DNA of 64,000 nucleotides, taken from the NCBI RefSeq assembly GCF_006345805.1, contig NC_043026.1, forward strand, positions 12,627,579 to 12,691,578, in the 5' to 3' direction. Source of the stretch: Octopus sinensis (lineage: Eukaryota). Positions within the stretch are counted from its first letter, which is position 1. The number at the start of each line of letters is the position of its first letter. Of the stretch, positions 1 through 61,772 are shown one piece after another. Under the pieces are notes generated by a model. It did no database searches. It had not been told where the DNA came from and worked only from the letters and a program-made list of their open reading frames with translations. The translations under genes were made by a program, and so were the position numbers.

Positions 1-82
1 GGAGTACAACGGACATCAATTAACGAGTTCGTTATAATTGCTTAATCGGTTATTCCCTGATTCCGTGTGAGGAACGGTAAGT
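1..82 (+). promoter_or_regulatory. First exon and splice donor of type-A ZNF gene A1 (exon ends ACG at 74-76, GTAAGT at 77-82)
   Basis: Block is homologous to those at 13835-13990, 14780-14935, 27690-27850 and 33300-33445. Each lies upstream of a type-A ZNF in matching orientation and ends in a canonical donor. Confidence 0.7.
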
Positions 83-483
83 CGGCGAAGATTTACTTGA
101 ATAATATTAAATCTGTAATTACGTTTGTAAATAATAGAATTGTTATTACGTGGAACCCTTTCTACGATCCAGTAATTCTATTCAAGGGAAATCACATAAT
201 TTATGGTGAAACGATATAAAAGCGGGATAAGTTATTTTATGTACCAGGGTATTATCGCTTTTACTGCCCAAAATGCTAAATTCTTGTTAATCGGGCACTA
301 TGAGTCTATGTATAAAATATCTGTCTGTCTGTGAATGGTGAAGTCGTGAGCGGAAACTGTCATGAAGCCGGAAAATTGAACTTTCTCTTTCTTTGTCGTT
401 CATCGAGAGTTAATGTCTGGTTTCCGTAGATTCTGGCCAGATATATGAGGAGCGTAAGCATACACGTTCGGGCTAGAATTTCT

Positions 484-914
484 GGATCTTTTCGGTTTGA
501 ACGGCAGTTTTTTCTAGCGGTATCATACGAAATTGTCACCCATAATTATGACCCTAGTATCGATCTATTGCATTTTAATCTGTTTTAGGGTTAGGGTTAG
601 TTGGGGTGAGGGGAAGGGTATCTTTTTTTCTTCACAAATGTAAATAAACCCAATCTGTTTCTTAAACGAGGGACATATTCATACGGCACAGAATGTTTTT
701 GTTTTTTTTTACCTCAATAGACGTCATTGATTGCTTGAAATTTCAGAAATTGAAGAAAAAAACCCAACAAATATCTTACAAACTATAGAATTTTCTCAAT
801 AAAGCCAAGAGAAAAAGTTGTTTTATAAACACATTCTACCAGTGTACGAAGTTTAAAAGTGTTTAGTTACGTGGAAAGTATTTTAAAAAACTGCCGGTCA
901 AACGGAAAAGATCC
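484..914. mobile_element. ~430-bp MITE with ~30-bp TIRs GGATCTTTTC(C/G)GTTTGA(A/C)CGGCAGTTTTTT and an internal TTAGGG-like tract
   Basis: Inverted termini are visible directly. Related copies at 9007-9418, 14081-14484 and ~25945-26416. Confidence 0.85.
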
Positions 915-987
915 GAATATTGTAATATGTGTAAAACAACTTGCTCTAAACGAATATGACAAAAAAAAAATGCACATAGTGAATTTC

Positions 988-1915
988 CAAAAGCTGATGA
1001 TTGGGCACTAAGTGTGGTGGAACCGATTTTCAAGGGGAAGTTGTGGGGCATATAGGGGGGTGAAGTTATTGGAGCATGCAATGAAGATTGTGGAAAGGGT
1101 GTTGGAGAGGAGAATTTGGAAGGAGGTGGATGTGGACATGATGCAATTTGGTTTTATGCCAGGAAAGAGGACAATAGTTAATTAATTTTTTGGCTCAAAA
1201 AGCAAGGCCATGTAGTTACGTACAGGGTGGTGTTCATGTAAAGAATTCAGGTCACTTGTGGTCAAGGGAGACTTTGAACTGAGGGGTCGTCGGCATCTTC
1301 ACCATCTCGTCCGGCAGCTTATTCCACGGATCCGCAACCCAGACAGAGAAAGCCCCTCTCCTTCGATTGAGATGAAATCGTCACAGATAGAGCTTTTCGG
1401 AGTGACCCGAAAATAGATGCAGTGTTCATTGTAAGAGGAATGCCGATATAAGAAGGTGTTGCATATGTGCATCGTTGATCAGGAGAAGGCATTGATAGGG
1501 TTCCAAGGAAGGTGATTAACTGGGCATTGAGGAAGAGAGGTGTACAAGAGTTAATAGAGAGAGTAGTGATGAGTTTGTACGAAGGGGTAAAGACCAGAGT
1601 TAGAATTGGATCAGGGCTGTCAGAGGCATTTGCAGTGAAAGTTGGTGTGCACCGGGGATCTGAATTGTCACCATTGTTGTTTGAAACTGTGGTTGATGTG
1701 GTGTTGGTGGGTGCAAGAGAGGGATTGATAATGGAGATACTGTGTGTGGATGACCTGGTTCTGATGAGTGAGACAATAAAGGGATTGAGGGAGAAGTTTT
1801 GGAAATAGAAGGAAGCGTTTGAAAGCAAGGGTTTGAAGGTAAACTTTAGGAAGACAAAGGTGATGGGGAGCGGGGTGGAAAGAGAAGTGTTAGTAAGGTG
1901 GATCCATGTGCAGTA
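988..1915 (+). mobile_element. Degenerate RTE-clade LINE reverse transcriptase fragment, interrupted at 1178-1411
   Basis: Peptides LLEHAMKIVERVLE..MQFGFMPG and DRVPRKVINWALRK..GVHRGSELSPLLF..VDDLVL are RT motifs. Stops and frameshifts present. Confidence 0.9.
1178..1411 (-). mobile_element. 5'-truncated CR1-clade LINE 3' end nested in the RTE fragment, TSD AATAG
   Basis: Matches the 4239-4669 element. AATAG at 1173-1177 and 1412-1416. The RT frame (GKRTI/DAVFIVR) rejoins across it. Confidence 0.8.
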
Positions 1916-2052
1916 TGTCTTTAAAATCCCATTGGTATTCCACAACCAACATAGTGGTGATGTTGGCTTTAGTACTGATCTATTGTTTTGAATCTCTCTT
2001 TTTCGAAATGACCTCTTACATCTGACACTGTTGTTTCTCTCTTTTATTTCAG

Positions 2053-2331
2053 AGACTATCACTGGACATTGGCACCAAAGCATTGTTTCCATCAGAGAAC
2101 ATCGTCAATATTCATCACTTTTTGAAAACTGAAAGAAAATGTTATACAGAACAGATTGAAGAACTCCAAAGAATTCCAGTGAAATATTTCTTCTCGGCTG
2201 AGATTGATAGAAACATTTCTCTTGTGAAATTTTTGAAATGTCTACAAGACTATTTTGTACTGAAATTAAACTTGGATAATTTTAAAAGGAATCTCAGAGT
2301 ATTTTCAGACACCAAGAAGGATTACAGTTGA
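2053..2331 (+). other. Type-A leader upstream ORF, 92 codons open from the splice acceptor (RLSLDIGTKALFPSEN...KKDYS*)
   Basis: Acceptor TTTTATTTCAG at 2042-2052. The frame is open from the first exon base. The same 279-bp ORF is at 7470-7748 and 12885-13163. Confidence 0.5.
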
Positions 2332-2480: not shown

Positions 2481-3512
2481 ATGTCACAAGAGAAACCACA
2501 ATCAGCTTTTCAGTGTGATATCTGTGAAAAGATTTTCACTCAGAAATGTAATTTGACCACTCACAGGCGTATTCATACAGGAGAGAAGCCATTTCAGTGT
2601 GATATCTGTGGTAAATCATTCCCTCGAAATAGCCATTTAGCTGTTCACAGACATATTCATACAGGGGAGAAGCCATATCACTGTGATGTTTGTGGCAAAA
2701 CATTCTCTCAGGTAACTGCCTTAACTGTACACAAACGTATTCATACAGGGGAGAAGCCATATCATTGTGATATCTGTGGTAAATCATTCTCTTATAGTAG
2801 TGATTTAACTGTACACAAACGAATTCATACAGGAGAGAAGCCATATCATTGTGAGGTCTGTGGTAAATCATTCTCTGGAAGTAGTTATCTAACAGTACAT
2901 AAACGTATTCATGCAAGAGAAAAGCCATTTCACTGCGATATTTGTGGTAAATCATTCTCTTTTAATAATGGCTTCATTAATCATAGTCGTATTCATTCAG
3001 GAGAAAAACCCTTTCGCTGTGATATCTGTGGCAGATCGTTCTCCCTGAGTAGCAGCTTAACTACTCACAAACGTATTCACACAGGAGAGAGGCCATTTCA
3101 CTGTGAAATCTGTGGTAAATCATTCTCTGCAAACAGTACCTTCATTACACACAAGCGTATTCATACAGGAGAGAAACCCTATCAGTGTGATGTCTGTGAT
3201 AAATCATTCCCTTACAATACTAGCTTAATTGATCACAAACGAACTCATACAGGGGAAAAACCATTTCACTGTGATATCTGTGGTAAATCATTCTCCTACA
3301 GACATGTCTTGATTAATCATAAACGTACTCATACAGGAGAGAAGCCATTTCGATGTGATATCTGTGGTAGCTCATTCTCTCAAAGTTTCCAAATAATTCA
3401 TCATAAACGTATTCACACAGGAGAGAAGCCATTTCACTGTGATTTCTGTGGTAAATCATTCTCTCAAAACTCAAACTTAACTAAACATATGGCTATCCAT
3501 ACAAAAGTGTGA
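2481..3512 (+). CDS. C2H2 zinc-finger protein A1, 343 aa, 12 tandem fingers, 9-aa N-terminus, no effector domain
   Basis: 12 Cx2Cx12Hx3H repeats with TGEKP-type linkers and an ATG start. Confidence 0.95.
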
Positions 3513-3784: not shown

Positions 3785-4175
3785 ATCATCATCATCATCA
3801 TTATTTAACGTCCGCTTTCTTTTGCTGGCATGGGTTGGACGATTTGACTGAGGACTGCCTGCACCAGGATCCAATCTGATCTGGCAGGGTTTCTACGGCT
3901 GGATGCCCTTCCTAATGCCAACCACTCCAAAAGTGTAGTGGGTGCTTTTACGTGCCACCAACACGAGGACCAGTTTGGTGGTACTGGCAACGGCCACGCC
4001 CAAATGGCGCTTTTTACGTGCCACCTACACAGGAGCCAGTCCAGCGGCACTGGCGACGACCTCGCACGAATGTCTCACATGCCACCAGCACAAGTGCTAG
4101 TAAGGCGACGTGGAATGGTGTGTTTAACGTGCCATCGGCACAAAGGCCAGCTTTATAACCGTAAATGTATTCGCA
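3785..4175 (-). mobile_element. RTE LINE 3' UTR and tail fragment, (GAT)n tail with several GTGCC-GGCAC units
   Basis: Homologous to 60900-61772. Confidence 0.8.
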
Positions 4176-9896: not shown

Positions 9897-10340
9897 GGCA
9901 AGTGAAAATCAAAGAATCAAATCAAAATCGAAATCGATCAACATCAATGGAATTTGTAGTTTGTGGCACATAAGAGAACCATCCGAACCTGGCCGTAGCC
10001 AGCACCGCATCGACTGGCCTCCGTGCTGGTGGCACGTAACAAACACCATCCGATTGTGGCCGTGCCAGCCTCGCCTGGCTCCCGTGCCGGTGGCACGTAA
10101 AATGCACCATCTGATTGTGGCCGTTCGCCAGCCTCGTCTGGCACCTGTGTCGGTGGCACATAAAAAGCACCCACCACACTCACGGAGTGGTTGGTGTGAG
10201 GAAGTGCATCCAGCTGTAGAAACACCGCCAGATCTGACTGGAGCCTGGTGCAGTCTTCGGGCTTCCCAGACCCCAGTTGAACTGTCCAACCCATGCTAGC
10301 ATGGAAAGTGGACATCAAACGATGATGATGATGATGACGA
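9897..10340 (+). mobile_element. RTE 3' UTR and tail copy with about four hairpin units and (GAT)n
   Basis: Homologous to 60900-61772. Confidence 0.8.
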
Positions 10341-14779: not shown

Positions 14780-14933
14780 AACCCTGTTTCTCCCTCTCGC
14801 GGGGAACGAAGGAAATACATGAGATATAAAGGGGAACAACTTCATAGCGAGTACGTCATTTAACGACTTCGATTATAATTGCTAATCGGGCACCGACCGA
14901 CTGATTGATTGCATGTGACGACGAATGGTAAGT
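14780..14933 (+). promoter_or_regulatory. Core promoter (TATAAA at ~14826), first exon ending in ATG (14925-14927) and donor of A4
   Basis: Conserved type-A block followed by GTAAGT. Confidence 0.7.
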
Positions 14934-16300: not shown

Positions 16301-16896
16301 ATAATTCGGTATCGTTCAAATCTTCTTTCTATATATATATATATATATATATTTATTTATTTATTTATATTTACACCGACACATACATATGTACACACAC
16401 ATGTTTTGAGAGGCTCAATCTTTAAAATCCCATTGGTATTCCACAACCAACATAGTGGTGATGTTGGCTTTAGTACTGATCTATTGTTTTTAATCTCTCT
16501 TTTTCGAAATGCCCTCTTATATCTGACACTGTTGTTTCTCTCTTTTATTTCAGAGACTATCACTGGACATTGGCACCAAAGCATTGTTTCCATCAGAGAA
16601 CATCGTCAATATTCATCACCTTTTCAAGACTGAAAGAAAATGTTGTACAGAACAGATTGAAGAACTCCAAAGAATTCCAGTGAAATATTTCTTCTCAACT
16701 GAGATTGGTAGCAACATTTCTCTTCAGATAACAAAAAGGATTACAGTTGATGAAAACAGAGCAGTAGAAATATTTACTAGGAACAAGCTGTCGGGGAATA
16801 ACAAAAACTGTATCCACGTGTGTTGTGGTGATTGAAGTAAGATAAGGGACAAACATTATTAAAAATAATTGAAGAATATATGTTTATTCTGAAGAG

Positions 16897-17757
16897 ATGT
16901 CACAAGAGAAACCACAATTATATCATTGTGACATCTGTAAAAAGACTTTCAGTCATAAATGTAATCTAACCACTCACAGGCGTATTCATACAGGAGAGAA
17001 GCCATTTCACTGTGATAGCTGTGGTAAATCATTCTCTACAAGCAGCTATTTAACTACTCATAATCGTATTCATACAGGAGAGAAGCCATTTCATTGTAAT
17101 ATCTGTGGCAAATTATTCACTGCACGCAATGACTTAACTAAACACAGACGCATTCATACAGGAGAGAAGCCATTTTTCTGTGATATCTGTGGGAGATCAT
17201 TCTCCAGAAATAGCAGTTTAACAACTCACAAACGTATTCACACAGGGAAGAAGCCGTTTCACTGTGATGTTTGTGGTAAATCATTCGCTGCGAACAATAG
17301 GTTAACAAAACACAAGTTTCTTCATACAGGAGAAAAGCCCTTTCACTGTAATATCTGTGATAAATTATTCACTACAAGTACTGATTTAACTCAACACGTA
17401 CGTATCCATACAGGAGAGAAGCCCTTTCACTGTAATATCTGTGGTAAATTTCTCAGTACAAGCAGTTCTTTGACAGAACACATACGAATTCATACAGGGG
17501 AGAAGCCCTTTCGCTGTAATATCTGTGGTAAAAAATTCTCCGCAAGCAGTTCTTTAACTAAGCACAGACACATTCATACAGGGAAGAAGCCGTTTTGCTG
17601 TGATATCTGTGGTAAATCATTCTCTTACTATAGTATCTTAACTGTTCATGAACGTATTCACACAGGGGAGAAGCCATATCACTGTGATATCTGCGGTGAA
17701 TCATTCTCTCTAAACAAAAGTTTAACTAGACATATATCTGTTCATAAAAAAGTGTGA
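16897..17757 (+). CDS. C2H2 zinc-finger protein A4, 286 aa, 10 fingers
   Basis: Intact ORF. Its leader exon starts at 16554 and carries an internal deletion relative to the other type-A copies. Confidence 0.95.
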   Translation: MSQEKPQLYHCDICKKTFSHKCNLTTHRRIHTGEKPFHCDSCGKSFSTSSYLTTHNRIHTGEKPFHCNICGKLFTARNDLTKHRRIHTGEKPFFCDICGRSFSRNSSLTTHKRIHTGKKPFHCDVCGKSFAANNRLTKHKFLHTGEKPFHCNICDKLFTTSTDLTQHVRIHTGEKPFHCNICGKFLSTSSSLTEHIRIHTGEKPFRCNICGKKFSASSSLTKHRHIHTGKKPFCCDICGKSFSYYSILTVHERIHTGEKPYHCDICGESFSLNKSLTRHISVHKKV

Positions 17758-33535: not shown

Positions 33536-34545
<1,010 letters not shown>

Positions 34546-40375: not shown

Positions 40376-41131
40376 TCATTTTTTCCCATGTGCGTATACA
40401 AGCAATGTATCGTGTGGGGTCAGTGTGACCAACAGCCACTGGACAGTCAATAACGGCGTGATTGCTTTCCAGTGTCTGAATAACACCTGAAATCATTCTC
40501 TTCAGATTTCCGCCCGTCCAGCTGGGCCGAAGTGGTCATCTGTATTCTTCTACTGCCAGCTTCTAAAGGGCAGAGGAATGCAGCCCCAGTCTGCTGCTAC
40601 ACTGGGCCAAAATATTTCAACTACCCAGCTACAGATTAACAGAGTAAGTACATGACCTAAGAAACAAAGTACTAGTGTTGGTTTTTGCATCTAAACCCTG
40701 CCATACTGTATTCCAGCATGGCCACAGCCCAGTACCTGAAACAAGTAAAAGATAATATATATCTTTCACATAATCATAATTAGAACCTGTACAATCTTCC
40801 ACTCTGTAATCTCATTTTCTGTAATGTCTACTGTTTCTCTCTTATTTCAGATTACTGGATAACATTGGATTAAAGGATTTATCATTTTTGAAAGATTAAA
40901 CAAAGCTGTGACACAGAACAAAGAGATCCCTGTTTATAGAAAGAAGGTAAATTTTGTGTGAAATATTTCTTGCGACTGCAGCAATATTTCTTCTTCAATG
41001 AGGATTTTGCATTCCTATTAACCTTGGATTACAAAAGAGCTGGCAGCTTCTGCAGATATTGACCAAGATAAGAAATTTTATAGGAATGAAGTGTGTAAAC
41101 ATCTGCATATTGTGGTGAGAAAATATAAATT

Positions 41132-42483
41132 ATGGAAAGTGAATTGCGTGAGGACAATGTGAAATGTAAAATGCTGACGGAAAGTCTTGACTTTATTGAG
41201 GAGGTGCCAAAAGATAGAGGAAAAACATCTCACAACTGTGATATCTGTAAAAAGTCATTTACTCGGAAAGAAAGCCTCACGATTCACAGACGTATTCATA
41301 CAGGAGAGAAACCATACCACTGTGATATCTGTGGAAAATCATTCTCTCAAAGTCACCACTTAACTAAACACAAGCGTGTTCATACAGGGGAGAAACCATA
41401 TCGCTGTGACATTTGTGGTCAGTCATTCTCTGTTGGAAGTACCCTGACTAAACACAAACACATTCACACTGGTGAGAAGCCATTTCATTGTGATGTGTGT
41501 GGTCACGCATTCTCTATACAAAATAATTTAACAAAACACAAACACATTCATACAAGAGAGAGGCCTTATCAGTGTGATTTCTGCTGTAAATCATTCTCTA
41601 AAATTTCTATGTTAACTAAACACAAGCGAATTCATACTGGAGGGAAACCGTATCAGTGTGATTTCTGTGGAAAATCATTCTCTAAAAATTCTACCTTAAC
41701 TAAACACAGGCGTATTCATACTCGAGAGAGACCTTATCGGTGTATTACCTGTGGTCAATCATTTTCCTCAGGAAGTTCCTTAACTAAGCACAAACGTGTT
41801 CACACTGGAGAGAACCATTCCATTGTGATTTATGTGACAGGTCATTCTCTGGACGATTTTCCTTAACCACACACCGACGCATTCATACAGGGGAGAGACC
41901 TTATCGGTGTGATATCTGTGGTAAATCATTCTGTCGAAATGACCACTTGACTGCACACAGGCGAATTCATACTGGAGAGAGACCGTATCAGTGTGATATC
42001 TGTGGCCAGTCTTTTTCTGTACGGAGTTCCTTAAATAAACACAAACGCACTCACACAGGGGAGAGGCCTTATCAATGTGCCATCTGTGGTCGGTTATTCT
42101 CTGAAGGAAGTTCCTTAACTAAGCACAAGCGCATTCACACTGGGGAGAAACCATTTTGTTGTGACATCTGTGGACTCTCATTCTCTTCAGGATTTCTTTT
42201 GACTACACACAAACGCACTCACACGGGAGAGAAACCTTTTCGGTGTGACACGTGTGGTAAATCATTCTCTCGAAATCAACACTTAACGAGACACAAACGA
42301 GTTCACACAGGTGAGAAGCCGATTCATTGTGATATCTGTGGCCAGTCATTTTCTGTTGGAAGTAGTTTAACTAACCACAAACGAATCCATACGGGAGAGA
42401 GACCTTATCGGTGTGACACATGTGGGAAATCATTCTCTCGAAATGATTGCTTAAATGAACACAAACGCATTCATAAAAGATAA
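41132..42483 (+). CDS. Type-C ZNF C1, 15 fingers (450 aa if one missing base at ~41812 is restored)
   Basis: A single -1 in the linker (GAGAACCA vs GAGAAACCA) joins ORFs 41132-41866 and 41947-42483. Confidence 0.75.
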
Positions 42484-43549
42484 AAAGCATTTCACTTTGG
42501 TAAATCATTCTCTGATAATGATTTTTGACTGAAACAAATGCATTCAAGGAGTGGAGGAACCGTATCACTGTGATATTTGTGGTAAATCATTCTCTCAAAA
42601 CACAATTACACTTAATTGCATTCAAACTGGAGAGGAATCATATCAGTGTGTTAATCTGTGGCCAGTTGTTCTTTGATGGAAGTACATCAACTAAACACCT
42701 CGGCATTCATATAGAGAGGTTGATTCCATTCTTTATCATGGTCTTAAGAATGGAATCAACCTTTCTGTCTGTATATCTACCTTCTTTATAATGTTGGCAA
42801 ACGAAATGGAGATAAGAATATGTATTGTCTGTTTGATGGAAGACTTCTATAAATGGCTGAAGATTGCTCAACATTTTAAAACTGATGTAATTACTCACAG
42901 TGTTTAATAAAATGAAGTAGCATGAAACGATTGTACCAAATTACCTAAGATATTCTTGTTGCTTATTTTGATTATAATCACCCCATAGATTTATATGGAT
43001 AATACCGTACAAAATTCTGGTGCCTCTGACTTAAGTACCATATTCATTTGAATCTAAATTTTGCTGAACCTATATATATATATATTGAAGGCTAGACCCT
43101 TCAATGCTGTGCTCCAGTATGGCCACAGTCCAGTACCTGAAACAAGTGAAAGATGAAAAAAATATCTTCCCATAGTCATGAATATAACATGTAAAATCTT
43201 CCACTGTGTAGTCTCTGTTGTTTTATCAAGTATCCTCTGTAATTTCTGTTGTTTCTCTCTTATTTCAGATTACGGGATAACATTGGATTAAAGGATTTAT
43301 CATTATTGAAAGATTAAACAAAGCTGTGACACAGAACAAAGAGATCCCTGTTTATAGAAAGAAGGTAAATTTTGTGTGAAATATTTCTTGCGACTGCAGC
43401 AATATTTCTTCTTCAATGAGGATTTTGCATTCCTATTAACCTTGGATTACAAAAGAGCTGGCAGCTTCTGCAGATATTGACCAAGATAAGAAATTTTATA
43501 GGAATGAAGTGTGTAAACATCTGCATATTGTGGTGAGAAAATATAAATT

Positions 43550-44841
43550 ATGGAAAGTGAATTGCGTGAGGACAATGTGAAATGTAAAATGCTGACGGAA
43601 AGTCTTGACTTTATTGAGGAGGTGCCAAAAGATAGAGGAAAAACATCTCACAACTGTGATATCTGTAAAAAGTCATTTACTCGGAGAGAAAGCCTCACGG
43701 TTCACAAACGTAGTCATACAGGAGAGAAACCATATCGCTGTGATATCTGTGGAAAATCATTCTCTCAAAGTTACCACTTAACTAAACACAAGCGCATTCA
43801 TACGGGAGTTAAACCATATCACTGTGATATCTGTGGTAAATCATTCTGTCAAAGCATTCATTTAACTAAACACAAGCGTATTCACACAGGGGAAAAACCA
43901 TATCACTGTGATATCTGTGGTAAATCATTCTCTGTAAGTAGTGAGTTAACTAGACACAAACGAATCCATACAGGAGAGAAACCTTATCAATGTGATATCT
44001 GTGGTAAATCATTCTCTAAAAATTTTGTCTTAACTAATCACAAACGCATTCATACAGGAGAGAAACCGTACCAGTGTGGTATCTGTGGTCAATCATTTTC
44101 TGCAGGAGGTTCCTTACATAAGCACAAGCGCATTCATACAGGGGAGAAACCATATCGCTGTGATATCTGTGGGAAATCATTCTCTCAAAATGATAAATTA
44201 ACTAACCACAGGCGCGTTCATACAGGAGAGAAACCTTATGAGTGTGATATCTGTGGTAAATTATTCTCTCAAAATTCTGCCTTGACTGAACACAAACGCA
44301 TTCATACAGGAGAGAAACCATATCAGTGTGAAATCTGTGGCCAGTCTTTCGCTGCAGGAGGGTCTTTACATAAGCACAAACGCATTCACACAGGGAGAAA
44401 CCTTACCAATGTGATATCTGTGGTGAATCATTCTCCATAAATGATCAATTAACTAAACACAAACACATTCACACAGGAGAGGAGCCATTTCAGTGTGATG
44501 TATGTGGTCAGTCGTACTCTACTGCAGGTTCCTTGAGTACACACAAACGTATCCATACAGGTGAGAAGCCTTTTCGTTGTGATATCTGTGGTAAATCGTT
44601 CTGTCAAAATCAACAGGTAATTTCACATAAACGGGTTCACACAGGTGAGAGGCCCTACCACTGCGATATCTGTGGCCAGTCGTTTTCTGAAAGTAGTAGC
44701 TTAACTAAACACAAACGCATTCATACGGGAGAGAGACCTTATCGGTGTGACACCTGTGGTAAATCATTCTCTCGAAACGATCACTTAAATAAACACAAAT
44801 GCATTCATAGAAGAGAATCGTTGTCTGATAACCATTTCTGA
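43550..44841 (+). CDS. Type-C ZNF C2, 14 fingers (430 aa if one missing G at ~44395 is restored)
   Basis: A single -1 in the linker (ACAGGGAGAAA vs ACAGGGGAGAAA) joins ORFs 43550-44440 and 44533-44841. Confidence 0.75.
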
Positions 44842-49713: not shown

Positions 49714-50855
<1,142 letters not shown>

Positions 50856-58800: not shown

Positions 58801-59063
58801 AAATCCAAGTTTTGTCTTTTTTCTCTTAGTGAAAATCATGCGGTTGTTAATATTGGAATTGAATGGGAAAAGCAGGCTCTTCATCCAGCTCCCCTTATTC
58901 TCCTCACCATTCCCATCACAGCCTGCATCACCTCCTGAACCCCACCCGACTCTCACTTTGGGCAGCTTCTATTTTATAATTTTATGCATGCGTGAAACAT
59001 TAATAGAAGAAAACACTTTCATTTCATTTCTTATTATGGGTCAGGGGAGGAGGTGGGGTTTTT

Positions 59064-61772
59064 TGAATGGGAGGAGGAGAGCCTTCCAAATGTTGACCCA
59101 GTAGAGGGACCAGCTACCCGAATAGACAGCTCCCTTGTAGTTAAGGCAATTAAGGATATGAAACCAGGTAAAGCCCCAGGCCCATCAGGAATCACTGCTG
59201 AGATGCTTAAAACAGCTGGCTATGTGGGCTATGGCCTAGTCACCTGCATTGTAAACCAGGTAGTTCTTAATGGAGTCATACCCATTGACTGGCGTAGCAG
59301 CACCATAGTCAACTGCTACAAGGGTAAAGGTGATGCTCTAGATAGAAATAACTACAGGGGTATTAAACTGTTGGATCAGGTGATGAAGGTCACAGAGAGG
59401 GTCATAACCCTTCTCATTAGGGAGAGAATTTGCTTAGATGAGATGCAGTTCGGTTTTGTGCCAAGTAGAAGCACCACCACTAATGCTATATTCCTGGTCC
59501 GACAACTGCAGGAGAAGTACCTAGCTAAAGATAAACCCCTCTACATAGCTTTTGTGGACTTGGAGAAAGCCTTTGACAGGGTTCCTCGATCCCTTATCTG
59601 GTGGTCGATGCGGAAACTGGAGATTGACGAATGGCTAATAAGGGCTGTACAGGCTCTATACAGAGAGGCTGTCAGCAAGGTTAGGATTGGCAAAGAATAT
59701 AGTGAAGAACTCCGGGTAGAAGTAGGTGTACACCAAGGCTCCACCCTCAGTCCCCTTTTATTCATCATAGTCCTCCAGGCAATAACAGAGGAATTCAAAA
59801 CAGGATGCCCCTGGGAGCTCCTCTATGCTGATGACCTGGCCCTCATAGCAGAATCACTACCGGAACTAGAAAAGAAATTTCGAGTGTGGAAGCAAGGGTT
59901 AGAATCAAAGGGCCTTAGAGTAAATGTAGCAAAGTCCAAAGTTATAGTAAGCAGAAAGGCGAACTCATCACACACTCCCTCGGGCAGGTGGCCCTGCTCG
60001 ATCTGAAGGAAAGGTATAAGTAGAAACTCCATAAGATGCACCCAATGTAAGCTATGGACGCATAAGAGGTGCAGCAACATCAAAGGGAAATTAACTGATA
60101 AGATAGCTTTCATGTGCGGCAGATGCACAGGGACAGTAGACATCACAGACACTCAGAAAACAGATTCCATCACACTCCAGGGAGAGAAACGAGAAGTAGT
60201 TGATAGTTTCCGCTACCTGGGTGACCAAGTTAGTAGTGGCGGTGGATACTCAGAGAGTATCACCACTAGAATACGAATAGCCTGGGCAAAGTTCAGAGAG
60301 CTCCTACCCCTACTGGCGACAAAGGGTCTCTCACTCAGAGCGAAAGGTAGATTGTATGATGCATGTGTGCGAACTGCCATGCTTCACGGTAGTGAAACAT
60401 GGGCTGTGACTGCAGGGGATATGCGTAGACTTGAAAGAAATGAAGCTAGCATGATCTGCTGGATGTGTAATGTCAGTGTGCATGCACGACAGAGTGTAAG
60501 CACCCTGAGAGAAATGCTGGACATAAGAAGCATCAGATGTGGTGTGCAAGAGCGACGCTTGCGATGGTATGGTAATGTGCTGCGGATGGATGAGGAGAGA
60601 TGTGTGAAGAAGTTCCACTCCCAAACAGTTGAAGGTAACAGGGGGAGAGGTAGACCCAGGAAGACATGGGATGAGGTAGTCAAGCATGACCTCAGAGCGC
60701 TGGGCCTCACTGAGGCAATGGCGAAGGACCGAGACCTCTGGAGATATGCTGTGACTGCAAAGACCCGGGCTGCTTCCTGCGCCAGTTCCACATAGCCCCT
60801 GCTCATTGAACGTACACTGGATCCCAGAATGTCCGGCTATGCTTGAGGAGACCCGTTGAGTCAAGCACATGAACATGAACATTGAAATAAATATCAATGG
60901 AAATAGTAGTTGCGATACCTGTTCCGGTGGCACATAAAAAGCATCATCCAAACGTGGCCGTAGCCAGCACCGCCTCGACTGGCTTCTGTGCCGGTGGCAC
61001 ATAAAAAGCACCATCCGAATGTGGCCGTAGCCAGCACCTCCTCGACTGGCTTTTGTGCCGGTGGCACATAAAATGCAACATCCGAACGTGGCCGTAGCCA
61101 GCACCGTCTCGACCGGCTTCTGTGCCGGTGGCACATAAAAAGCACCATCCGAATGTGGCCGTAGCCAGCACCTCCTCGACTGGCTTTTGTGCCGGTGGCA
61201 CATAAAATGCACCATCCGAACGTGGCCGTAGCCTGCACCGCCTCGACTGGCGTAAAAAGCACCATCCCAACGTGGCCGATGCTAGCACTGCCTTGACTGG
61301 CTTCTGTGCCGGTGGCACATAAAAAGTAACATCAAAACGTGGCCGTAGCCAGCACCGCCTCGAGTGGTTTCTGTGCCGGTGGCACATAAAAACACCATCC
61401 CAACGTGGCCGTAGCCAGCACCGCCTCGAATGGCTTCTGTGCCGGTGGAACATAAAAAGCACCATCCGAACGTGGCTGTTGCCAGCGCCGCCTTGGCTGG
61501 CTTCCGTGCCGGTGGCACGTTAAAAGCTCCAACTGATCGTGGCCAATGCCGGACCCCACCCCCTGGCACCTGTGCGGGTGGCATGTAAAAAGCACCCACT
61601 ACACTTGCGGAGTGGTTGGCATTAGGAAGGGCATCCAGCTGTAGAAACTATGCCAGATCAGACTGGAGCCGGGTGCAGCCCCTAGCTTCCCAGACCCCGG
61701 TCGAACCGTCCAACCCGTGCCGGCGCGGAAAACGGACGTTAAACGATGATGATGATGGTGATGATGATGATG
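59064..61772 (+). mobile_element. 5'-truncated RTE LINE: RT ORF 59064-60795 (one premature TGA at 60004-60006), 3' UTR with 67-bp array, (GAT)n tail, ~80-bp TSD
   Basis: RT motifs (GKAPGPSG, YRGIKLL, QFGF, FVDLEKAFDRV, GVHQGSTLSPLLF, YADDL). Flanks 58984-59063 and 61773-61852 are duplicated. Confidence 0.95.
60924..61590 (+). repeat. 67-bp tandem array (~11 units), each with a TGTGCC-GGT-GGCACA palindrome
   Basis: Unit starts at 60924, 60991, 61058, 61125, 61192, (deleted unit), 61309, 61376, 61442, 61509, 61575. Confidence 0.9.

Follow-up and report, generated by a model that had tools for sequence, protein, structure and literature searches.

A 92-codon open frame in the leaders of tandem octopus zinc-finger genes most likely evolves like non-coding DNA

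The 64-kb stretch of Octopus sinensis DNA considered here (the window; CM016888.1, GCA_006345805.1) is a tandem cluster of C2H2 zinc-finger (ZNF) genes with transposon fragments between the genes. Six paralogous leader exons in the window (A1 to A6), each upstream of a ZNF open reading frame (ORF) of the family termed type A, carry an intact or broken copy of a frame that runs for 92 codons from the splice acceptor. An earlier note on this DNA proposed that the type-A mRNAs are bicistronic, and that the frame either encodes a separate small helical protein, possibly a detached effector partner of the ZNFs, or acts as a translational control element tuned by ACG versus ATG. Comparison of the copies with one another and with those of the sister species O. 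vulgaris indicates that the frame most likely evolves like non-coding DNA. It is probably a decaying leftover ORF, in which a non-coding exon of the 5'-untranslated region (5'-UTR) came to hold a transient reading frame, was homogenised by gene conversion and is now undergoing neutral decay, and we infer that a stable protein product of it would be of no importance to the animal.

The 3' part of A1 exon 1 (1-76, + strand; the exon begins upstream of the window) has an in-frame TGA two codons before the ACG with which it ends (74-76), and is followed by the donor GTAAGT (77-82) and by an intron (77-2052) containing a reverse-transcriptase fragment (about 1000-1900). The leader exon (2053-2480, 428 nt) opens with the long ORF (2053-2331), consisting of 92 codons without an in-frame ATG (2053-2328) and a TGA (2329-2331), and continues with a spacer (2332-2480) that has stops in all frames and precedes the ZNF ORF (2481-3512, 343 aa, 12 C2H2 fingers). 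The TGA overlaps an ATG (TGATG) and lies 150 nt before the ZNF ATG at 2481, as the earlier note had described. Its reading of the junction is likewise borne out by coordinate, as all five visible type-A first exons end in ACG or ATG directly at the donor: ACG before GTAAGT in A1 (74-76, +), A5 (27700-27698, -) and A6 (33312-33310, -), ACG before GTGAGT in A3 (13843-13841, -), and ATG before GTAAGT in A4 (14925-14927, +), where ATG TGA stands just upstream. The phase-0 frame that the acceptor opens has exactly 92 codons in A1, A2 and A3, and an in-frame ATG CGA CGA ACG (13852-13841, -) lengthens it to 96 aa in A3. The frame itself contains no Met and four of the five exon-1 ends offer ACG only, such that the candidate start is an ACG in A1, A5 and A6, and an AUG in A4 (the last exon-1 codon) and in A3, where it precedes the donor by 12 nt. 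The acceptor TGTTTCTCTCTTTTATTTCAG was matched seven times in the window, where chance predicts 0.02 occurrences, and six of the matches are at type-A leaders; ALFPSENIVNIHHFLK is an example of a tryptic peptide of the frame's translation. The type-A ZNFs have the N-terminus MSQEKPQ... in common, with 9 aa ahead of finger 1 (8-9 had been claimed), and their Pfam matches are C2H2 families only, in agreement with the earlier remark that they lack an effector domain.

The syntenic O. vulgaris cluster (loci L002 to L004, OX597841.1) keeps the gene order, with ZNFs of 343, 263, 231, 286 and 259 aa, and the substitution comparison covered 11 leader copies (9 distinct), six from O. sinensis (A1-A6) and five from O. 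vulgaris (A2-A6). The 276-nt frame shows 41 variable-site events, of which 12 are synonymous, 28 nonsynonymous and 1 a stop; the neutral expectation for these events (kappa 2) is 9.9, 29.2 and 1.9 (P=0.28). Reading the sites in the two other frames leaves the picture unchanged, and the events fall on the three codon positions as 15:10:16, with no third-position excess. Crude omega (dN/dS) comes to 0.77 when all copies are included and to 1.09 when only the four distinct intact ones are, pairwise Nei-Gojobori (NG86) values range over 0.2-2.9 overall and 0.67-2.85 among intact copies, and an omega of 0.3 is rejected both for all copies (P=0.003) and for the intact ones (P=0.002). As a control, the identical method applied between species to the ZNF ORFs of A2-A5 gives 12 synonymous changes over 742 sites and 8 nonsynonymous changes over 2375 sites (omega ~0.2). 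Purifying selection on the leader peptide, the mark of a micropeptide, was looked for and not found, and a dN/dS of about 1 (0.77-1.09) is the outcome that the earlier note had itself named as speaking against a protein.

The frame is also frequently broken. Three independent disabling lesions were identified: an 82-nt deletion in A4 of both species, a GAA>TAA change in A5 and A6 of O. sinensis, and a 1-nt insertion present in O. sinensis A5 and in A2 and A6 of O. vulgaris. The frame is disabled in 6 of the 11 copies (A4, A5 and A6 of O. sinensis; A2, A4 and A6 of O. vulgaris). In the O. sinensis A4 leader exon (16554-16896, +) the deletion shifts the frame into a different 94-codon ORF, upstream of the ZNF ORF at 16897-17757. 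The A5 leader exon (25722-25294, -) carries TAA at codon 36 as well as the insertion, above an intact ZNF ORF (25293-24514), and the A6 leader exon (32330-31903, -) has the same TAA. A6 is a dead copy, its ZNF ORF (31902-31804) being cut after finger 1 (32 aa) in both species. The A4 deletion and the stop common to A5 and A6 had been noticed earlier; the additional frameshift of A5, the truncation of the A6 ZNF and the missing exon 1 of A2 come on top of these. The long ORF is intact in A2 (leader exon 7748-7321, -; ORF 7748-7473; ZNF ORF 7320-6529) and in A3 (leader exon 13163-12783, -; ORF 13163-12888; ZNF ORF 12782-12087), the latter with a 46-nt deletion in its spacer. O. sinensis has an open frame in A2 and a broken one in A5, O. 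vulgaris a frameshifted A2 and an open A5, and the ZNF ORFs below both leaders are intact and nearly identical in the two species. Both indels inside the frame have lengths that are not multiples of 3. The preservation of the frame across copies that the earlier note had asked about is thus absent, among paralogs as well as between the sister species. Individual copies have diverged from the consensus by 7-11 substitutions, and a random substitution creates a stop in 4.7% of cases; from substitutions alone about 5.9 of the 9 distinct copies are expected to be free of new stops, and 7 of 9 were found. On this count, the number of open copies is that predicted by neutral decay of a young repeat.

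From ~135 nt upstream of the acceptor to the end of the long frame the type-A paralogs are 92-97% identical, compared with 72-85% in the promoter and exon-1 blocks (that of A1 has homologues at four other loci within this range) and about 75-85% in the finger arrays. The last ~135 nt of A1 intron 1 are as conserved among paralogs as the exon, and among A1, A2 and A4 the similarity of this stretch before the acceptor equals that of the exon. Synonymous and nonsynonymous divergence are both below the spacer divergence for A3 and A4, and the leaders of these two copies are identical between O. sinensis and O. vulgaris. The A2 and A5 leaders differ between the species by 2.9% and 5.8%, and their ZNF ORFs by 0.4% and 1.5%, while the 1-nt insertion and the TAA have a mosaic distribution over the matching positions of both species. 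Because the intron is as alike as the exon, dS and dN are lowered together, the lesions are mosaic and the leaders diverge more than the ZNF ORFs, the pattern implies gene conversion among the A1, A2, A5 and A6 leaders since the species split, rather than selection on a peptide. Nor is the conservation specific to the frame, since the intron is equally similar and the longest invariant run lies in the spacer, as a 32-nt block TTGTGGTGATTGAAGTAAGATAAGGGACAAAC (2404-2435 in A1) that is unchanged in 9 of 9 distinct copies and adjoins the 30 nt that are the most variable part of the leader. This block carries motifs resembling 5' splice sites (GAA|GTAAGA), type-B leaders (see below) retain TTGTGGTGAGAA at the equivalent place (near 41105-41116), and the block may serve as an alternative donor or bind U1.

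Leaders of a second ZNF subfamily in the window, type B, are homologous to the type-A leaders and lack the open frame. The leader B1 (40851-41131, +; ZNF ATG at 41132) has an acceptor of the same kind and collinear blocks with 57% identity to the type-A leader, and stops in all three frames; B2 (43269-43549, +) precedes the ZNF ATG at 43550, and B3 (51132-50856, -) belongs to a dead ZNF copy. The indels that separate type-B from type-A leaders are not multiples of 3. The leader exon thus predates the type-A family, and the open frame is not common to both. The finger arrays of B1 and B2 (41132-42483 and 43550-44841) each fall into two ORFs because of a 1-nt frame shift (GAGAACC instead of GAGAAACC near 41815). 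This shift reflects either a genuine truncation or a homopolymer error in the long-read assembly, and the third type-B array (49800-50855, - strand) is broken at multiple places.

The splice junction and the order of the two ORFs agree with the gene models of O. vulgaris, in which the leader ORF and the ZNF ORF are annotated as separate genes, the former (CAI9742668.1, CAI9742669.1 and CAI9742672.1) having two exons and lying 100-150 nt upstream of the latter. The O. vulgaris annotation was built from Iso-Seq and RNA-seq data by means of StringTie, PASA, TransDecoder and EVM (PMC10700109). Its protein P0001 (96 aa, MRRT followed by the 92 residues) corresponds to ATG CGA CGA ACG plus 92 codons, as in O. 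sinensis A3. In P0003 the first coding exon consists of ATG alone, at the position corresponding to the last exon-1 codon of A4, and is spliced onto an A4-type exon. P0002 uses a different upstream exon (26 codons, GT-rich; L003 10001-10078) that joins the A5 leader exon in phase to give a 118-aa ORF, which is evidence for alternative first exons in type-A genes. Because a 3-nt first coding exon is the product of an ORF call on a spliced transcript, these sister-species models lend indirect support to use of the proposed donor and acceptor. Their spliced ORFs are the very ones that the earlier note had drawn from exon 1 into exon 2, ahead of the ZNF ORF. The architecture described in that note, with both ORFs on a putative single mRNA, is accordingly supported, and a second functional protein is not.

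For O. vulgaris the leader ORFs already have database entries as hypothetical proteins, and a search of the 92-aa translation against 5.8 billion proteins returned three matches, all of them O. vulgaris 'hypothetical predicted proteins'. A profile search of 1.84 billion representative proteins recovered these three ORFs, one spurious repeat protein and one partial O. bimaculoides model, with no homolog outside Octopus. The O. bimaculoides model (XP_014789997.1, 132 aa) follows the beginning of the frame over its C-terminal 34 residues, with 24 of 32 positions identical, and goes no further. The translation has no Pfam match and no PDB sequence match, and its AlphaFold2 model is all-helical, with long helices, at a mean predicted local distance difference test (pLDDT) score of 47, which denotes low confidence. 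Exact look-ups of the A1 and A3 ZNF proteins gave one genomic contig each and no transcript-type (Logan) contig, and the A2 ZNF protein had no record. Queries for O. bimaculoides orthologs returned unrelated short ZNFs only when a 60-aa ZNF N-terminus was used, and were dominated by generic vertebrate ZNFs when the full A3 ZNF was used. A literature search on cephalopod upstream ORFs (uORFs) and zinc fingers found no paper describing the leader ORFs.

These results bear on the idea of a very young, fast-evolving, Octopus-specific small helical protein, started at the junction ACG or ATG, in a birth-and-death phase and acting as a detached partner of the effector-less ZNFs. The predicted helices, the listing of three such ORFs as proteins in O. 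vulgaris and the 5 of 11 copies that are intact are in its favour, as are the length of the frame and a possible re-opening in O. vulgaris A5, both taken up below. Such a protein is nevertheless very improbable, given an omega of about 0.8-1.1 with values of 0.3 or less rejected, a frame that is broken above intact and conserved ZNF ORFs and differently so in each sister species, the absence of AUG from most copies and of Met from the frame, and a type-B homolog that is closed. Homologs, domains and a confident fold were not found in the searches above, and the sole O. bimaculoides match follows the frame for 34 residues only. For these reasons the effector partner suggested in the earlier note is not upheld.

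A preferable explanation, which draws on comparison of sequences throughout, is that the 428-nt 'exon 2' is a non-coding 5'-UTR exon common to a young tandem family of Octopus C2H2-ZNF genes. In the ancestor of the type-A genes, 92 codons would have been free of stops, whether by accident or as the remains of former coding sequence; tandem duplication would then have multiplied the copies and gene conversion repeatedly overwritten them, while the frame decayed at the neutral rate. About half of the copies would be open solely because they are young, and the ACG or ATG at the end of exon 1 would be the exon side of a common splice donor, in phase by accident.

Several observations weigh against neutral decay from a non-coding exon. 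The comparisons are between two very close species and among paralogs that exchange sequence, which limits their power, and an omega of 0.5 could not be rejected (P=0.13 with all copies, P=0.06 with the intact ones). Within the leader, variability over the ORF is roughly half that of the spacer. O. vulgaris A5 reads TCA where O. sinensis A5 and A6 have TAA, which could be a re-opening of the frame through a TAA>TCA change. In addition, a 92-codon frame in sequence of 33% GC exceeds the expectation from composition: starting at the exon boundary, 92 or more codons without a stop occur in only 18 of 20000 dinucleotide shuffles of the leader (0.09%), and a run of this length in any frame occurs in 177 of 20000 (0.9%). 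The frame being longer than composition predicts by these frequencies, some cause has lengthened it in the ancestor. In reading the estimate, the six type-A copies count as one observation, as they descend from one ancestor. Stretches of 92 or more codons without a stop number 93 in the window, and the majority are not genes. The octopus genome has ~1,800 ZNF genes, whose leaders offer a great many places for such an event.

The excess length is the starting point for a different view of the origin of the frame, in which it is the relic of a once-coding exon (a lost ZNF N-terminus, or a captured piece of a gene or transposon) that became 5'-UTR when translation moved to the downstream ATG and is neutral today. 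The type-B and type-C ZNFs of the window have 35-55 aa before finger 1 and type A only 9, and the O. bimaculoides Gnomon model links the frame to upstream coding exons, both of which fit such a relic. The frame resembles no protein, domain or transposon product searched, however, and it differs in phase from the ZNF frame, with stops in all frames between them. As the type-B exon is closed in all frames and its indels are not multiples of 3, a non-coding ancestor is at least as parsimonious, and we regard the relic origin as unlikely. Whether the frame arose by chance or from coding sequence, the present pattern of substitutions and lesions reads as neutral.

In the leader of ~420-505 nt the main AUG, itself in mediocre context, is preceded by 3-7 upstream AUGs (uAUGs) that open short ORFs in other frames, three of them at constant distances from the main ATG (-342, -243 and -150). 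By the scanning mechanism, uAUGs generally lower translation of the main ORF, and by analogy the leader as a whole probably lowers ZNF translation. A form of control that is independent of the peptide has also to be considered, in which the junction codon, ACG (weak) or ATG (strong; A3 and A4), starts a long uORF whose stop precedes the ZNF AUG by 65-150 nt and which thereby holds ribosomes back from that AUG, with the strength of the start setting ZNF output and the peptide being irrelevant. The ORF lies wholly upstream of the main AUG in what the O. vulgaris gene models suggest is one transcription unit, some ORF of 36-96 codons runs from the junction in every copy, the start states vary among paralogs (ACG, ATG, and ATG CGA CGA ACG) with those of A3 and A4 kept between species, and a neutral omega is what a peptide-independent uORF predicts. 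By the same reasoning A4, with its junction ATG and 94-codon uORF, would be more repressed than A1.

Against these stand the features of the junction itself. ATG and its nine near-cognates make up 10 of the 64 codons and any exon end gives an in-phase codon, such that an ACG or ATG there is weak evidence of a start, the five ends moreover being paralogs. Most copies give the ACG an unfavourable context: position -3 is G in A1 but C in A3, A5 and A6, and the nucleotide at +4 after splicing is an A throughout. The length of the uORF varies from 36 to 96 codons without visible consequence, and the 3-7 uORFs that begin with AUG would dominate scanning. A2 lacks such an exon 1, and the type-B leaders manage without a long uORF. 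Control by the junction start is accordingly a tentative and rather unlikely reading of the frame. A structured RNA or internal ribosome entry site was considered separately and rejected, as the leader RNA folds no better than its shuffles (z = +1.77) and no Rfam family was found in the window.

The frame can be placed among several known kinds of upstream and lineage-specific ORF. The uORF-rich 5' leaders of eukaryotic genes, including clustered genes of the KRAB-ZNF type, have in common with it a spliced non-coding exon 1, a leader exon, several uAUGs, a long upstream frame and poor conservation of the peptide, but the octopus frame is unusually long (92 codons) and mostly without AUG, and its regulatory effect is only putative. 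Transient or 'proto-gene' ORFs are similarly confined to one lineage, with an omega of ~1, presence that varies among relatives, no homologs and a low-confidence fold; the octopus frame differs in lying in the leader of a functional gene rather than in an intergenic transcript, and in having been copied by tandem duplication and gene conversion. SNURF-SNRPN and the MIEF1 upstream microprotein likewise involve two non-overlapping ORFs per mRNA, the upstream one of less than 100 aa, but these upstream ORFs start with AUG and are under purifying selection; in the octopus frame purifying selection was looked for and not found, and an AUG start is available in A3 and A4 only.

KRAB, SCAN, ZAD and the cyprinid FiNZ (PMC10547256) resemble the frame as short sequences on the N-terminal side of the fingers in lineage-specific tandem ZNF expansions. 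They are fused in frame to the fingers and conserved over hundreds of paralogs, whereas the octopus frame is separate, closed in sister subfamilies and neutral. The domain profile and family-wide conservation expected of a ZNF effector were sought in Pfam, PDB and the profile search and across the type-B leaders, and were absent. Fusion to the finger array was likewise not found: the two ORFs are in different frames, the 150 nt between them contain stops in every frame, and no donor and acceptor were seen that could plausibly join them in phase. Fusion by read-through or a hidden intron was rejected on the grounds that the frames differ, stops occur within 9 codons after the TGA, and the inner donors are weak and in the wrong phase.

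The remaining features of the window concern individual copies and repeats. No recognisable exon 1 or promoter block was found for A2 between 7749 and 12086 (-), nor in O. vulgaris, and A2 may be expressed from the A3 promoter through onward splicing; a 724-aa O. sinensis GenBank gene model covers both A2 and A3. Downstream of the A6 leader (31902-29493, -; O. vulgaris L003 4468-6877) there is a 175-aa non-ZNF ORF without a Pfam match (31376-30849), followed by an unrelated ZNF array (30164-29493). A 257-aa ORF on the minus strand (1319-2092) was considered as an antisense gene and rejected, since it overlaps the A1 copy only and runs through the transposon fragment, which places it outside the repeat unit. 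Repeats include a short (TTAGGG)-like run (586-600), ~220-nt tandem repeats upstream of A6 exon 1 (33742-34250), a reverse-transcriptase ORF of the long interspersed element (LINE) type (59053-60795, Pfam RVT_1), and GC-rich short interspersed repeats (3790-4140, 9909-10318 and 60331-61599) that produce many spurious long ORFs.

Were the frame a true second cistron, it would provide a missing effector for the ~1,800 octopus ZNFs that have no KRAB-like domain, but the evidence points the opposite way. The locus serves instead as an example of how youth and gene conversion, by themselves, can keep a long leader ORF present in tandem duplicates. Transcript-based annotation converts such ORFs into 'hypothetical proteins', which calls for caution in the use of octopus gene catalogues, and comparison of paralogs together with a sister species can flag them. 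The locus also provides a small natural set of ACG, ATG and stop variants that bears on the control of ZNF translation by uORFs.

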